Part shown: in pieces, positions 1,386 to 47,317 of the stretch | How the letters are laid out: every line of letters begins with the position of its first letter | Numbering within the stretch: the first letter of the stretch is position 1 | Source: Pavona decussata | Taxonomy: Eukaryota | Direction: 5' to 3' | DNA: 64,000 bases | NCBI GenBank assembly: GCA_977016875.1 | Contig: CDRNST010000274.1 | Coordinates: 1,364,001-1,428,000 of the forward strand | The notes under the pieces: generated by a model | Databases searched by the model: none | The model's input: the letters and a program-made list of their open reading frames with translations, nothing else | What the model was told of the DNA's origin: nothing | Made by a program: the position numbers and the translations under genes

Positions 1386-1457
1386 GAACTTGACTGACAA
1401 CGAGTTGAAGAAACTGCCCAAAGGAGTTTTTGCTAACAATACCAAGCTAGGAAGGCT
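1386..1457 (+). CDS. LRR exon 1 (family A): NLTDNELKKLPKGVFANNTKLGR(L)
   Basis: catag|G AAC TTG...AGG CT|gtaagt; 72 nt, open frame. Confidence 0.85.
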
Positions 1458-3005
1458 GTAAGTATAACTTCTTCTTTGTCTGTCAAATAATAATCGAGGA
1501 GCTGGTGTTGCTTAAAAAGAAATATTGTGTCTCCTATAATAAATTCGTTTTTGCAGCCTTTGTTCATTAACTAGGCATGAATCAATTCTCAATCAAAAAC
1601 TGAAAAGGAGTCTAAAATTTTACTGTTCAGAACATGTGGTCGTTTAAAAGTATCGCCGTTTGTGTTGTAAACTAACTTATTAGTAGGGGGGGGGGGGGGG
1701 CATGCTTTAGAAGGAAAAAAGAGGAAATTTATTGAGTTACGAGAGCGATTTAAAGATCTTTGGTTTTATTTGATGCATACGGAATGGATAAGCCTTCCCG
1801 CAGTGGACATCTCAACAGTATTTGGATGAAAATTTTATAACAAAAGGGTTAATACGATAATCTTTGTTTGTATTCGTTGGCTGATAAGCTGCAATTTAAT
1901 GTATTTCGTAAGGACCGGTTTACAAGCTACTACCTGTCAGCGGATTTGGTGGCTCAACAGTATTGGAAAACGAATCCCCTGTGTATTTTGACACACGATT
2001 TACAGCCAAAGGTTTCCGGATTCATGAAATATGGTGAAGAGCACCAGTTTCTTATTAAATCGGGGAGACACTTTCGTACGGACCGCAGTGTCAATAAAAT
2101 TAAAAAAAAAAACGTGCACATACGAAATACTCAGGGATACATCTGGTATCATGTGAGCCGGCCTTAAGTTGAAAGACCCCGGCAATCTTAGAATTTCCTT
2201 AAAATTCGAACTTTGTACATAAAGTAGTTTATCGAGAAATTGACCTTTTAATGTGTCTACGCCCTTGTGGCAACTCTTTCCATCCAGCTGGCGCAAGTTC
2301 TTTGAAATTTTTAACAGCTGATGTAACGTTATGAGTAGCCAGCGTGTTAGACTCTAGAACAAGGGAGGGTGGAGGGAAATCGGTCACGTGGGAAGCGAGG
2401 GATCCGATGCTAGGATCGGTAAGACAAAGATAAAAAGAAACACAGTATCGTAGCGCAACGTCCACCTCTATTGCAACATTTTTACTTGAATTATATTTAC
2501 AATTTACAATTATAAGCGTATAAAGTGAAGCTGTAAGCCTGTTGGGTCCTTATTGGTCGTCCGATGTAATAACCTTTGATTCTGTAACCGCGGGAATTGG
2601 AATAACGGCACTATGTCTTGCGCTTATAACGGATGACTGGAAATGTAGCGGCCTTTGCGCGTGATATCTTGAAGTGGAAAGTTTTTCCCCCATCCAAGGG
2701 ACTTGGAAATTCCACATATTTACATATTCACGCATTTCACATATTCCTGACAAAAACAAGCATTAAAACAAATCCCGCCATTTATAAGTGTTTCTGTGTC
2801 TACTCTTATGAAGTATGCATACTTACTGTCTCTTTGTTTTCAAGTAACAAGGAAGTAGTCAGGAGTAATTTTAACGATTATTTTGTCGATTCACTCATTC
2901 CATAAACTGACGCGGTCGTATTTTTAAAAGTTTTAGCCGATAAAGTGTGTGGATATCATGTAAACTTACTAAGAACTTGGACAATCCGCATTTTTTTGTT
3001 GGTAG

Positions 3006-3053
3006 GTACTTGAATAACAACCAGCGGAAGGAACTGCCCAAAGGAGTTTTTGA
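3006..3053 (+). pseudogene. LRR exon 2 (family B), 3'-truncated: YLNNNQRKELPKGVF
   Basis: ggtag acceptor intact. After GTTTTTGA the sequence jumps to intron sequence matching ~8712 onward, so the 3' third and the donor are deleted. L->R change in the core. Confidence 0.8.
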
Positions 3054-3299
3054 ACGTTTGTTTTGTCTTTCTGTTTTGCTTTTTACACAAGTCAAAAGAC
3101 GTAATCATCTAGAAAAAACAGAGGAAATGTATTAAGCTGTGAGAGCAACTGAAAGATCTTTGCTTAGGTTTGATACGGAATTTATAAGCCTTCCCACAGT
3201 GTACACGCGAACAGTATTTGGATGATAAATTTGTAAGAAAAGGGGAAACGAGAGTTCCATCACAGCATTTATGCTAAAGGAAGAGTCTTTGCGAATACG

Positions 3300-3890
3300 A
3301 GTAAAAATAGAGCTGTAACCAGGATAAGACATATTGGATTAAAAAGCGTTCCGTGGTTAAAAAGATTAGAAAAAAATGAGCTTTCGGCCATCAGTCTATA
3401 GCCTTTAACGAATGAAAAAACGGAAATATATACGAAAAGGGCGCTAACACTTGAGAATAAAAGAAGAAGTGTGAAAAAAGCTAAAAGATAAAAATGGAAA
3501 TGAGGGCTAATTAAAATAAAATGGAATATTGCCTAGGCAACGGTTTTGAGTTATTATCCGCGTCGACAATTTTTGCTGTGTGTCAGGATTCGAGTGTTTT
3601 ACGAACGCGGTAATCGCCTTTGTCTATGACAAAAGAATTTTTGAAATCAATGCAATGATTGTTTTCCACGCATGGTTGGCAACATAAGAGCCATTAGAAT
3701 AGTTCTTCAAGTTCCGTTGATGTTCCTTTTTGCGGATTTGGAAGCATCTTCCGGTTTCTCCTATGTAGTTCCAAGGTCAGGTTTACATGGCATTTTGTAA
3801 ACAACATTGCATTGAAGATCCGAAGGTTGTCTGAACTTTGGACACGGGAATTCTTGATGAAGGGTTTTGAGTGGTTTGTTGTCAACACGG
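3300..3890 (-). mobile_element. Penelope-like element 3' fragment (GIY-YIG endonuclease remnant and 3' terminal region)
   Basis: Minus strand encodes NVVYKMPC..LG..IGETGRCFQIRKKEHQRN with frameshifts; hammerhead-like stem GGCTAT..ATGGCCGAAAGC at ~3378-3412; boundaries approximate. Confidence 0.65.
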
Positions 3891-44204: not shown

Positions 44205-44622
44205 AAACTTGGCTAACAATAAGCTGAAGGAACTGCCCAAAGGAGATTTTGCTAACAATAGGGACTTTACGCAAACACGACGCCGACGGCAACGAAAACG
44301 TCAATAAAGAAAAGGCTTACGTGCATTACAGATTTTGATGCATTTCGTCGCCATCTTCGGCCAAACAACAACGTGAAATGCCCAAATTCAAGGTTTTATG
44401 GAGAGCGTGAGAACGTGACAGTAAATTTTCATTCTCTGTGCTAACTTGAAGACCGTTCCAACCACTTCTGTTACTGGATAGTTTGGCCACATTGTACAAG
44501 TTGAACGAATTAGAATAAGCGCAAAGTTGTACAAGTAAAACGAGCTTGTATTTTCAAGTGACGTTGTCGTTGGCGTTGCCGTCGTGGTTACGTAAAGTCC
44601 CTAATAGCAGGCTGTGGCGGCT
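44205..44622 (+). pseudogene. LRR exon 12, MITE-interrupted copy of exon 6
   Basis: Same exon and same insertion as 30532-30949. Confidence 0.85.
44260..44602. mobile_element. MITE copy inside exon 12
   Basis: Same TIR and TSD as 30587-30929. Confidence 0.88.
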
Positions 44623-46122
44623 GTAAGTATAACTTTTTCTTTGTCTGTAAAATAATCACTGAGGTCCTGGTGTTGCTTAAAAAGAAATATTGCGTTTGTG
44701 TGTCCTATAATAAATTACAGTTTGCAAATGCTAGCACATACTCTGTATACACTAGTTGTTCCGCTGTAATTACCTTTGGTTGTGTATTGCATACTACGTG
44801 TGATTAAAAAGTCTAACAATTGCACGTGGTGTCATGTAAACAAAAGTTTTAGTTTTCCTAAGAGATCAAACTTTGGCCGCTACATGGTAGGTGTTCTTTA
44901 CGGGTACGCCATAATAGGTATTATTCGTTGGCCCCTGGGCCTAAGCCACGGAGCCATATTACAATTAATCTGGGAACAAAAATCAATGCAACTAAGGCAA
45001 TGTTTGAAAATGTGATTCACCGATGAGGGTCTGAACCTGGTTTTCTAAATAGTCGGATACGTTAACCACTCGGGCACTGAAGAAAAACACGCTGGCAACG
45101 TAGCTGATTTTTGAACTTATCAGTAGTTGCAAGCTTGAAAGAATATATATTCTGCAATCAGGATCATCTCACTACTTGCTCGCTTGATCGGTGATGGACG
45201 ACCAAATCTACCAAATTAAATTGATTTCTAGTCCGCTCTCCCCTAACAAGTACTAGAAAGGGAGGGGACAAGAAATCAATTTCCTTTAATTGACGGCGTT
45301 TTACATCAGAAATTTTCTGAAATGTTTACAGCTCGTTGTTAACTCATTTCTATATATTAAAAGGTTACATTTCATGCTAACAAATTAGACGACCGCATTG
45401 AAAAACTAGCAAAGAAAGAAGCATGAAAGAAGCATTTCAAATAGTGGAAAGAAAGAAGAATTGATCGCTGTAAATGAGCACAAGCTTAATTTCCACAACC
45501 ATCAGACGTGCGGCCTTATTAAACCTTTTAAGTAAGAATCGGTATAAATTAAGCGCGCAGATCCTTAATGAAATTATTACCTGAGTCTATCACATGGAAC
45601 AGTTCTTTATTAGTGGCCAGGGAAGAAACATGGACAACTGTCTCAGAAGTGGTCACTTGCTGGCGATTTGTTAACAAACCCTGGAAAACTTCGTTCAAGA
45701 AAAAATAAACATATTAAATGGGATTCTGTATAAACGATCATGTAGAAAAATCGAGGCAATGGAACTTCAACTTTGTTCGGAGAGTCTCTAAATATCTTTA
45801 TAGTCTTAGAATATTACGGTCCTACCCTATATTTTGTTTAAAGCCTTCCATGATATGAGAAAACTCAACAATTAACATGAACATGGGATAAGTAAAAGAA
45901 GCATGATTATCATGGACATGTTGTTATAAAATTTACTTAGCTTTTGGCTCCTTTGAGGATAAATGATTTTCAAATAAGACCCTGTGATTATTGATTATTA
46001 AGATAAAAAATAAATTGGTTAACTAACACTTGTAAAGGTGTACATGTATAGCTTATACTACACAACTTAAGTAAAATAAGTCACATAATAGCAATCATCA
46101 AGGTGTGATTATTTGTTGATAG

Positions 46123-46194
46123 GAAACTGGCTTACAACAACCTCAACGAACTGTCCAAAGGAGTTTTTGCTAACAATATCCAGCTGCAGGGGGT
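46123..46194 (+). CDS. LRR exon 13 (family A, recombinant): KLAYNNLNELSKGVFANNIQLQG(V)
   Basis: gatag|G AAA...GGG GT|gtaagt; 5' half resembles exon 7, 3' end identical to exon 8. Confidence 0.85.
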
Positions 46195-47245
46195 GTAAGT
46201 ATAACTTCTTCTTTATCTGTCAAATATTAATCGAGGAGCTAGATTTGCTTTAAAATAAATATTGTGACTCCTATAATAAATTCGTATGTGCAGCCTTTAT
46301 TTAATAACTATGCATGAATGAATTCTCAATCAAAAACTGAAAAGGAGTCTAAAATTTACCTGTCAGAAGACGTGGTCGTTTAAAAGTGTCCCGTTGGTTT
46401 TGAGCGGGGGGGGTGGGGGGGGGGGGGGAGAGAAATCATCTTTAAAAGGAAAAGAAAAGGAAGAAATTGATTGAGTTACGAAAGCGATTAGAAGATCTTT
46501 AGTTATACTTGATGCATGCAGAATTGATAAGCCTTTCCGTAGTGGACATCTCAACAGTATTTGGTTGACCAATTTTTTACGAAAGGGTTAAAGGGAGTTC
46601 GATTCCATCATTTATATCAATACAAGAATCTTCGTTTACATTGGTTTGCTGATAAGCTGCAACTTAATGCATTCCGTAAGGACCAGTTTACACACTACTA
46701 TCCTTCGGCAGATTTGGCGGCTCCAGAGTATCGGAAAACGATTCTCTTGTATATTTGCAGTTTCAATTATAAGCGTATACAGTGTAACATTAAGCGTGTA
46801 GGCTCCTTATTGGTCGTCCGCTCCGGTTCATTCTGGGATGGGGGAATTTGAATCACGACATATTCGCACTTTTAACGGATGGTTAGAAATTGGGGGGCTT
46901 TTGGGCGTGGTATCTTGAAGTGGAAAGATTTTTCCCCCATCCAAGGGACTTGGAGATTCCACATTTTTACGTATTTCACATATTCCTGAGAGCAAGAATC
47001 ATAAAAACAAATCCCGGCATTTACAAGTGTTTCAGCGTCTGATAAATGATGCATATTGACAGTCTCTTTGGTTTTAAGTAAAAGGGATTCCGAAGCAGTT
47101 AGAAGTAACGACTATTTTGTCGAGTCAATCATTAAATAAACTGAAGAGGTCATGTTTTTTAAAAGTTTTAGCCAATAAAGTGTTTGGATATCTTGTAAAC
47201 TTACTAAAAACTTGGAAAATCCGCATTTTTTTTTTTGGTTGGTAG

Positions 47246-47317
47246 GTACTTGAATAACAACCAGCTGAAGAAACTGCCCAAAGGAGTTTTTAATAACAAT
47301 AAACGGCTAGATTGGCT
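47246..47317 (+). CDS. LRR exon 14 (family B): YLNNNQLKKLPKGVFNNNKRLDW(L)
   Basis: AG/GT-bounded 72 nt; tandem copy of exon 10. Confidence 0.85.

Follow-up and report, generated by a model that had tools for sequence, protein, structure and literature searches.

A 64,000-nucleotide stretch of the coral Pavona decussata (contig CDRNST010000274.1, hereafter C274) harbors a tandem array of short exons, each of which encodes a single leucine-rich repeat (LRR). The whole stretch is referred to as the window (C274:1364001-1428000), and positions without a prefix are window coordinates. The repeating unit, termed a cassette, can be traced by the motif AARGGNGTNTTY, which occurs 15 times in the window versus 1.3 occurrences expected by chance. 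A nucleotide profile built from these sites retrieves 20 cassette copies, all on the plus strand (Table 1). Every complete cassette comprises a polypyrimidine tract, an AG/G acceptor border, 23 codons, and a CT/GTAAGTAT donor border (slashes in such pairs mark the exon edge). The resulting exon is 72 nt long with no exceptions and corresponds to one 24-residue LRR. The cassettes fall into two classes, A and B, which are split by the upstream intron and by the presence of ANN or DNN in the repeat.

The introns on both sides of a cassette are in phase 2 because the first base of the exon completes the codon opened by the last two bases of the preceding one. Exons start with G or A and end in CT, TT, or GT, so that any join creates CTG, CTA, TTG, or TTA (Leu) or GTG or GTA (Val) and stays in frame. 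Among 31 distinct cassettes, the first base is G in 29 and A in two, while the last two bases are CT in 25, GT in five, and TT in one. The acceptor AG is present in all 31 and the donor GT in 30. The donors are uniform and strong, with GTAAGTAT in 21 of the 31 and GTGAGTAT in six. No insertion or deletion is found in the exons of 36 distinct units. Sequence variation is confined to particular codons: entropy peaks at exon codons 22 and 23 (2.7 and 2.5 bits) and at codons 1, 3, and 4 (1.6-1.9 bits), and it is zero at L2, N5, L7, L10, F15, and N18. Across the 194 kb around the window and a few paralogous loci, 21 distinct 3′ ends and 11 distinct 5′ ends occur. The first-pass annotation of this DNA had described a near-constant center with variable ends between 1386 and 47317 and joins that always yield Leu or Val in frame. 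Every end peptide it listed is present, both at the 3′ side (TKLGR, KELYV, KQLGW, SRLWR, TKLQW, IQLQG, KRLDW, and TQLRD) and at the 5′ side (NLTD, YLNN, RLNN, NLPN, NLAN, ELAY, SLNN, NLAD, and KLAY). Of these, NLAN sits in a cassette broken by a miniature inverted-repeat transposable element (MITE). The joining rule holds for all observed combinations.

Joined exons read ...L-x-x-[L/V]-x-L-x-x-N-x-L-x-x-L-P-K-G-V-F-x-N-N-x-x. In this register, exon codons 22 and 23 supply LRR positions 2 and 3, the codon at the junction encodes Leu-4, and codons 1, 3, and 4 supply positions 5, 7, and 8. The strand that forms the concave face, LxxLxLxxN, is split by the intron and is built from the last two variable residues of one exon and the first of the next, just as the same annotation had proposed. 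Such a composite strand arises at every junction, plain serial splicing included, and the architecture alone is no argument for combinatorial splicing. Among structures in the PDB, a single cassette is closest to the repeats of lamprey VLRs, LRRTM, and repebodies (NQLxxLPxGVFDxL), and the matches are strong over NxLxxLPxGVF, with E values down to 1e-31 when summed over repeats. One position departs from the ‘typical’ 24-residue consensus, LxxLxLxxNxLxxLPxxxFxxLxx. LRR position 22, normally a buried Leu (GVFDxL in VLRs), is Asn in all 31 distinct cassettes (GVFxNN; codons 17-18, e.g., 1435-1440), a family-specific change to the hydrophobic core pattern.

Self-comparison of the 194 kb around the window reveals duplications nested at 1.6 kb, 9.7 kb, and 31.9 kb, with intron flanks that are 75-100% identical between units. 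A 9,739-bp unit recurs about 3.6 times (C274:1401010-1436409), with 99.9% identity between copies (20 mismatches over 25.7 kb), and a further copy is 98.8% identical. Each of these units contains three A exons (one plain, one broken by the MITE, and one hybrid), a single B exon, and a minus-strand segment that looks by eye like part of a retrotransposon pol gene. Either the expansion is very young or copy number varies in this region. An 18.4-kb block (896-19286) has a counterpart 31.9 kb upstream with 99.07% identity, and more duplicate copies show 96-99% identity. Much of the window consists of such very young duplicates, and its cassettes are not independent of one another; the 15 that look intact encode only 11 distinct peptides.

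The hybrid cassette at 46123 illustrates a second route to new variants. Its upstream 400 nt are 100% identical to those of the 32450 unit. Over nucleotides 37-72 of the exon it instead matches the 34063 unit at 100%, and the downstream flanks of these two agree at 92%. This mosaic marks the cassette as the product of an unequal crossover with a breakpoint in the invariant exon core, and, together with the nested duplications, it demonstrates germline shuffling at the DNA level. The demonstrable diversity of the array arose in this manner, namely by (i) tandem duplication, (ii) unequal crossover, and (iii) point substitution.

Duplication has propagated damaged cassettes as well as intact ones. 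The exon at 30532 is interrupted by a 342-bp insertion (about 30588-30929) with terminal inverted repeats of ~42 nt (GGGACTTTACG...) and an AATA duplicated at the insertion site. The terminal inverted repeats and a large genomic family (more than 2,600 first-look candidates, 84-90% identity) identify the insertion as a MITE. Further copies lie at 44261-44602, 54000-54341, and from 63735; all four are 100% identical, which indicates that the host exon was duplicated after the insertion and that the broken exon itself was amplified. The cassette at 10113, with a mutated donor, has a 99% duplicate 31.9 kb upstream that retains the donor GT. The truncated cassette at 3006-3053 runs directly into T-rich sequence of the kind that intact B cassettes have ~330 nt further downstream; it has no donor, and its frame reaches a stop after about 42 codons. 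This cassette is an old relic carried by gene duplications. Cassettes cut at about the same point come after the first cassette, or the first two, at five paralogous loci (Table 1), and on a contig from another species a dead cassette occupies second place (L025:13000), with the truncation further along.

The array appears to start well upstream of the window. The Pfam LRRNT model matches exons directly upstream of cassette arrays on several contigs, and a genome-wide DNA search finds 13 LRRNT copies, several of them seen just upstream of cassettes. The copy on C274 (1321717-1321922) includes an intact exon (C274:1321777-1321896) that reads ACPEPCVCSPWRYDALINVSCVGKQLTSIPGPLPTDAGFL (ACPEPCVC...QLTSIPGPLP...) and ends CT/GT in phase 2, i.e., it is frame-compatible with the cassettes. 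From this exon it is about 8 kb downstream to where the array has its first cassette and 44 kb to the first one in the window, and 33 intact cassettes follow on the same strand up to C274:1492489. Genome-wide, at least 178 cassettes on many contigs fall within 3 mismatches of a 27-nt core, at least 56 of them exactly, and a ~1.3-kb intron part of the unit is 75-97% identical between loci. A contig from an independent ENA assembly that is coral-like (L025) carries an LRRNT exon with 64% protein identity followed by 72-nt cassettes, one of them dead, and this shared layout implies that the family is not peculiar to the P. decussata assembly. On the other contig traced from the LRRNT protein search (L026), no cassettes were seen in the DNA examined. 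The window is thus probably an inner section of a very long array, which belongs to a multigene family of corals that encodes LRRNT-capped and presumably extracellular LRR proteins.

A candidate first exon with a signal-peptide-like product (MESVVLLFTLLR..., MESVVL...) is located 1-2.7 kb upstream of LRRNT exons (Table 1), although its assignment as an exon is uncertain. Its paralogue at L017 has a phase-1 donor (A/GTAGTA), while the GT is absent at the C274 locus and at L022.

Table 1. Cassettes and associated features; coordinates without a prefix are those of the window, and slashes within splice borders mark the exon edge
Feature	Coordinates	Strand	Remarks
Intact class-A LRR exon (NLTDNELKKLPKGVFANNTKLGR)	1386-1457	+	AG/G...CT/GTAAGTAT
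Truncated class-B cassette	3006-3053	+	Homology ends after KGVF
Intact class-B LRR exon (YLNNNQLKELPKGVFDNNKELYV)	8288-8359	+
Class-B cassette	10113-10184	+	Donor GT mutated to GA
Transposon-filled gap between cassettes	10200-28900		Reverse transcriptase/protease, hAT dimerisation domain, DIRS-like ORFs (by eye)
Intact class-A exon (NLPNNELKELPKGAFANNSRLWR)	28946-29017	+	Starts A, ends TT
Class-A exon split by 342-bp MITE	30532-30949	+	Frame meets stop inside MITE
Intact class-A exon (ELAYNKLNELSKGVFANNTKLQW)	32450-32521	+
Intact class-A exon (NLTDNELKELPKGVFANNIQLQG)	34063-34134	+	Ends GT, giving junction Val
Intact class-B exon (SLNNNQLKELPKGVFDNNKRLDW)	35685-35756	+
Tandem 9,739-bp segmental repeat	37010-64000, runs past window end	+	99.9% identity
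Intact class-B exon (YLNNNQLKKLPKRVFNNNKRLDW)	37507-37578	+
Intact class-A exon (NLADNELKELPKGVFANNTQLRD)	42976-43047; identical copies 52715-52786, 62450-62521	+
MITE-broken exon copy	44205-44622; more at 53944-54361, from 63679 (cut by window end)	+
Hybrid class-A exon (KLAYNNLNELSKGVFANNIQLQG)	46123-46194; copy 55862-55933	+	Unequal-crossover product
Intact class-B exon (YLNNNQLKKLPKGVFNNNKRLDW)	47246-47317; copy 56981-57052	+
Paralogous truncated cassettes	L018:1817-1889, L019:8515-8593, L020:3786-3857, L021:9669-9742, L024:6761-6833		L020 copy on minus strand
Candidate signal-peptide exon	L004:6755-6800 (C274:1320755), L017:3280-3316, L022:2475

Selection on the exons was assessed with 36 distinct units (25 class A, 11 class B) and their 200-nt flanks. 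Trees were built from the flanks only, and parsimony changes were counted per column. The introns accumulate 2.09 (A) and 0.66 (B) changes per site, as opposed to 0.50 (A) and 0.14 (B) in the splice-proximal intron, which, polypyrimidine tracts included, is 4-fold more conserved than the rest. Framework codons (L2, N5, L7, L10, F15, N18, L21) show a single nonsynonymous change versus 42 expected at the intron rate (0.02-fold), while their synonymous changes run at 0.78-fold. The intron rate is therefore a fair neutral yardstick, and the exons have been under selection at the protein level.

The variable ends behave differently from each other. The first-pass annotation had expected the x positions to change faster than the flanking introns, and this expectation is borne out on one side of the junction only. 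At the 3′ x codons 22 and 23, 30 nonsynonymous changes are counted versus 13.2 expected, i.e., 2.28-fold the intron rate (P = 4.7e-5), whereas the 5′ x codons 1, 3, and 4 change at 0.78-fold the intron rate and are not elevated. Six-nucleotide windows of the flanks reach the codon 22-23 value in 0 of 252 cases in class A and in 9% in class B, and the result is unchanged with trees from the whole unit. The hot spot ends at the conserved core in one direction and, in the other, at the donor-proximal intron, which is very conserved (0.4-0.7); recombination among the units consequently cannot explain the signal. Diversifying change is concentrated on two residues of the concave face, a location that is usual in ligand-binding LRR proteins (PMC3341825, PMC11378527).

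Within the core, the non-framework codons (exon codons 6-20, e.g., 1402-1446) show 35 nonsynonymous changes and no synonymous ones versus 18.5 expected, while Leu codons of the 36 units do vary synonymously. This local synonymous deficit may reflect gene conversion or the small sample size. A constraint on the core at the nucleotide level was considered and dropped, since core variants across the genome include synonymous changes (CTA, AAG, GGC, GTC).

Taken together, the locus probably represents a very long array of single-LRR exons that belongs to an LRRNT-capped family and generates its variants at the DNA level. In such a scheme, an ancestral unit consisting of a 72-nt exon and about 1.5 kb of intron would have been copied repeatedly. 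Its intron would have interrupted the Leu-4 codon of LxxLxLxxN after the second base, and all copies would have inherited this position, which would place the solvent-exposed x residues at the exon ends and the framework NxLxxLPKGVFxNN in the middle. Purifying selection keeps the framework, while LRR positions 2 and 3 outpace the neutral intron, as in other ligand-binding LRR receptors. New variants enter through germline tandem or segmental duplication, unequal crossover in the conserved core, and point substitution. Since all exons are 72 nt long with phase 2 at both ends, those disabled by a MITE insertion, a deletion, or a mutated donor can be omitted in frame, and this phase symmetry probably explains how the array survives rapid turnover. 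Serial splicing of the cassettes into one transcript, and an extracellular receptor as its product, are what we infer from this arrangement.

Several points weigh against this reading. (i) Six of the 20 window cassettes are defective (one truncated, one with a GA donor, four with the MITE). (ii) Large transposon nests, with retrotransposon, hAT, and (by eye) DIRS-like remains, fill gaps of 5-19 kb between the cassette blocks. (iii) Neither an LRRCT nor a transmembrane or other 3′ exon turned up in C274:1314001-1508000, where the Pfam LRRCT model (applied genome-wide), motif scans, and the open reading frames (ORFs) of cassette-free stretches returned only transposon debris. With no 3′ exon in the 186 kb downstream of LRRNT, a single gene would exceed 170 kb and 30 LRRs. 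In a scan for seven-transmembrane segments, the best 147 of 4,635 candidates were scored and none was on C274, a sample too small to bear on a likeness to LGR genes. (iv) The C274 copy may be without a working first exon and decaying. (v) A search of a 1.84-billion-protein library with the 40-residue LRRNT exon returned unspliced ORF fragments only, and serial splicing is to that extent an assumption. (vi) The selection signal is a parsimony count on 36 units and not a likelihood site model.

Much of this would be expected of a dead or decaying array, in which the cassettes are relics that expand and erode neutrally and the core is conserved by recent ancestry and gene conversion. A breakage rate of 30% in the window, amplification of the MITE-broken exon to four copies at 99.9-100% identity, the transposon nests, the missing 3′ end, and the lost donor of the candidate first exon all fit such a history, as does the number of exon changes between 99% duplicates (2 in 222 nt), which equals the background rate. 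Neutral decay nevertheless remains an unlikely account of the array as a whole. The near absence of nonsynonymous change in the framework, set against an almost normal synonymous rate, calls for protein-level selection and not ancestry alone. The splice sites and polypyrimidine tracts are 4-fold better conserved than the rest of the intron, and the same layout persists in another species (L025).

A different question is whether the cassettes are used combinatorially, such that cells or colonies include different subsets and non-adjacent joins create new concave-face strands. The array is certainly permissive of such use: all exons have the same length and phase, every join yields Leu or Val, 21 distinct 3′ ends and 11 distinct 5′ ends are available, and the residues just before the junction are under diversifying pressure. 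Exon skipping may occur and, if the gene is expressed, the six broken cassettes must be skipped. Exon-skipped isoforms have, moreover, been reported for similar 72-bp LRR exon arrays of brown algae (PMC11378527). On the other hand, the uniformly strong donors and the conserved splice-proximal intron are the signature of constitutive exons, and the 5′-end x residues are not faster than the intron. The composite strand is equally present under serial splicing. No convincing docking/selector pairing was found either, the only complementarity shared by cassettes being that of the A/T-rich 13-mer TTTTTTGTCTAAA. This sequence lies at C274:1324330-1324342 in the LRRNT intron and is complementary to the upstream introns of 12 cassettes; it was rejected as a docking site, being of A/T-rich low complexity and probably a chance match. 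The genome also contains no spliced retrocopy with a cassette-to-cassette junction, in that a junction-spanning pattern gives 0 matches while the controls give 1 and 2. Combinatorial splicing is accordingly judged quite improbable. Of the first-pass proposal, the strand geometry and part of the variability stand, but the step to junctional combinatorial diversity does not, because the sequence offers only permissiveness.

The kinship of the repeat to lamprey VLR modules raises a third possibility, namely that the cassettes are donors copied somatically by gene conversion, via the 27-nt core, into an incomplete receptor gene. The identity of this core in at least 56 cassettes and the one germline crossover within it could be taken in the same sense. 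In VLRs, however, assembly takes place somatically in the DNA itself, and the cassettes do not act as exons for splicing; those of lampreys are not known to have conserved splice sites, fixed phase, or single orientation. The coral cassettes, in contrast, all have canonical, conserved splice sites at both ends, the same orientation, and an unchanging phase, none of which a recombination donor needs. The LRRCT model and motif scans revealed no germline gene in which non-coding DNA separates LRRNT from LRRCT, and the observed crossover is an inherited germline deletion product. VLR-like assembly is therefore hardly credible here.

The serially spliced, DNA-diversified array favored above has precedents, and the coral cassettes show the constant exon length, single phase, and tandem duplication of the single-LRR-per-exon, phase-symmetric layout. 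The closest parallels are the ROCO/LRR-kinase genes of brown algae (Ectocarpus, Saccharina), which contain shuffled 72-bp LRR exons (Zambounis et al. 2012, PMC3341825; Teng et al. 2024, PMC11378527). They share with the coral array one LRR per 72-bp exon, a uniform intron phase, tandemly duplicated exon-intron units, and positive selection on the concave face. They have been proposed as a source of receptor diversity through exon skipping, with isoforms reported (PMC3341825, PMC11378527). The two systems differ in that the LxLxxN strand lies within the algal exon (nucleotides 3-71 encode the repeat), whereas the coral intron splits the strand at Leu-4. In addition, the algal proteins are cytosolic LRR-ROC-COR GTPases, while the coral family is LRRNT-capped and presumably extracellular.

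The 90-bp-exon LRR arrays of Tetrahymena have equal exons, phase-2 introns, and a ‘junction amino acid’ encoded by two exons, and they undergo clonal expansion by unequal crossing-over (Xiong et al. 2019, PMC6564038). Equal exon length, phase-2 introns, and a codon split 2+1 across the junction are common to both arrays. The Tetrahymena case, however, concerns a ciliate with 90-bp exons and thousands of genes, and PMC6564038 ties no β-strand position to the junction. Animal genes for glycoprotein-hormone (gonadotropin) receptors and LGRs have, in the account that PMC11378527 gives of Koo et al. (1991), a run of similar-sized one-LRR exons with phase-2 introns throughout. The resemblance may extend to the 24-residue ‘typical’ LRR class, and an LGR4 chimera is among the PDB matches of the cassette. 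These receptor genes have 9-17 LRR exons and a last exon that encodes the seven-transmembrane segment, of which no counterpart could be linked to the coral array, and they are stable, unlike the recently amplified coral array.

The VLRs of lamprey and hagfish resemble the coral family in their NQLxxLPxGVFDxL repeat, in concave-face variation, and in having many cassettes near an LRRNT-bearing gene, but the coral cassettes are canonical exons with conserved AG...GTAAGTAT signals in one orientation and one phase. Dscam1 offers tandem, interchangeable, and frame-compatible exons that encode binding surfaces; it differs in using docking/selector RNA pairing to choose one exon per cluster, while a solenoid of LRRs requires a long series of repeats. 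Arrays of single-LRR exons with phase-2 introns, amino acids encoded across exon junctions, and the skipping of LRR exons have thus been described before in Tetrahymena, brown algae, and glycoprotein-hormone receptors. What sets the coral array apart is that its intron cuts the strand, that an LRRNT cap is present, that Asn occupies position 22 of a VLR-like repeat, and that the amplification is very recent.

If serially spliced, the array would add a fast-expanding LRR family of corals to the examples of a familiar gene layout and be of value mainly for annotation. Tandem duplication of receptor families is known to be pervasive in corals (PMC10236652). The array also illustrates how duplication, unequal crossover, and transposon hits remodel an LRR gene while phase symmetry preserves its readability. 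Given diversification at two residues combined with VLR-like repeats, it is reasonable to consider the family a candidate for recognition in corals. That LRRNT-capped arrays are diversified through splicing by cell, polyp, or colony and yield a variable recognition receptor is doubtful on present evidence. If true, it would mean a receptor for immunity, symbiont choice, or allorecognition and an RNA-level counterpart of the lamprey VLR in a non-bilaterian.

The largest transposon nest of the window (10200-28900) spans 18.7 kb. It includes, on the minus strand, a reverse transcriptase at 14527-15327, the C-terminus of a hAT transposase at 19682-21049, and the protease and reverse transcriptase of a long terminal repeat retrotransposon at 23604-24476. 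A GC-rich element on the plus strand (26372-28551) is DIRS-like by eye. A minus-strand KGVF match at 23578 is due to chance and falls inside a retrotransposon ORF. Elsewhere, three minus-strand ORFs of 129, 157, and 170 residues at 39592-41861 (with copies at +9739 and +19474) have no Pfam match; nearby sequence, which lies inside each 9.7-kb unit, resembles by eye a retrotransposon pol fragment (...LLGTVNFMSTFIPNL...).

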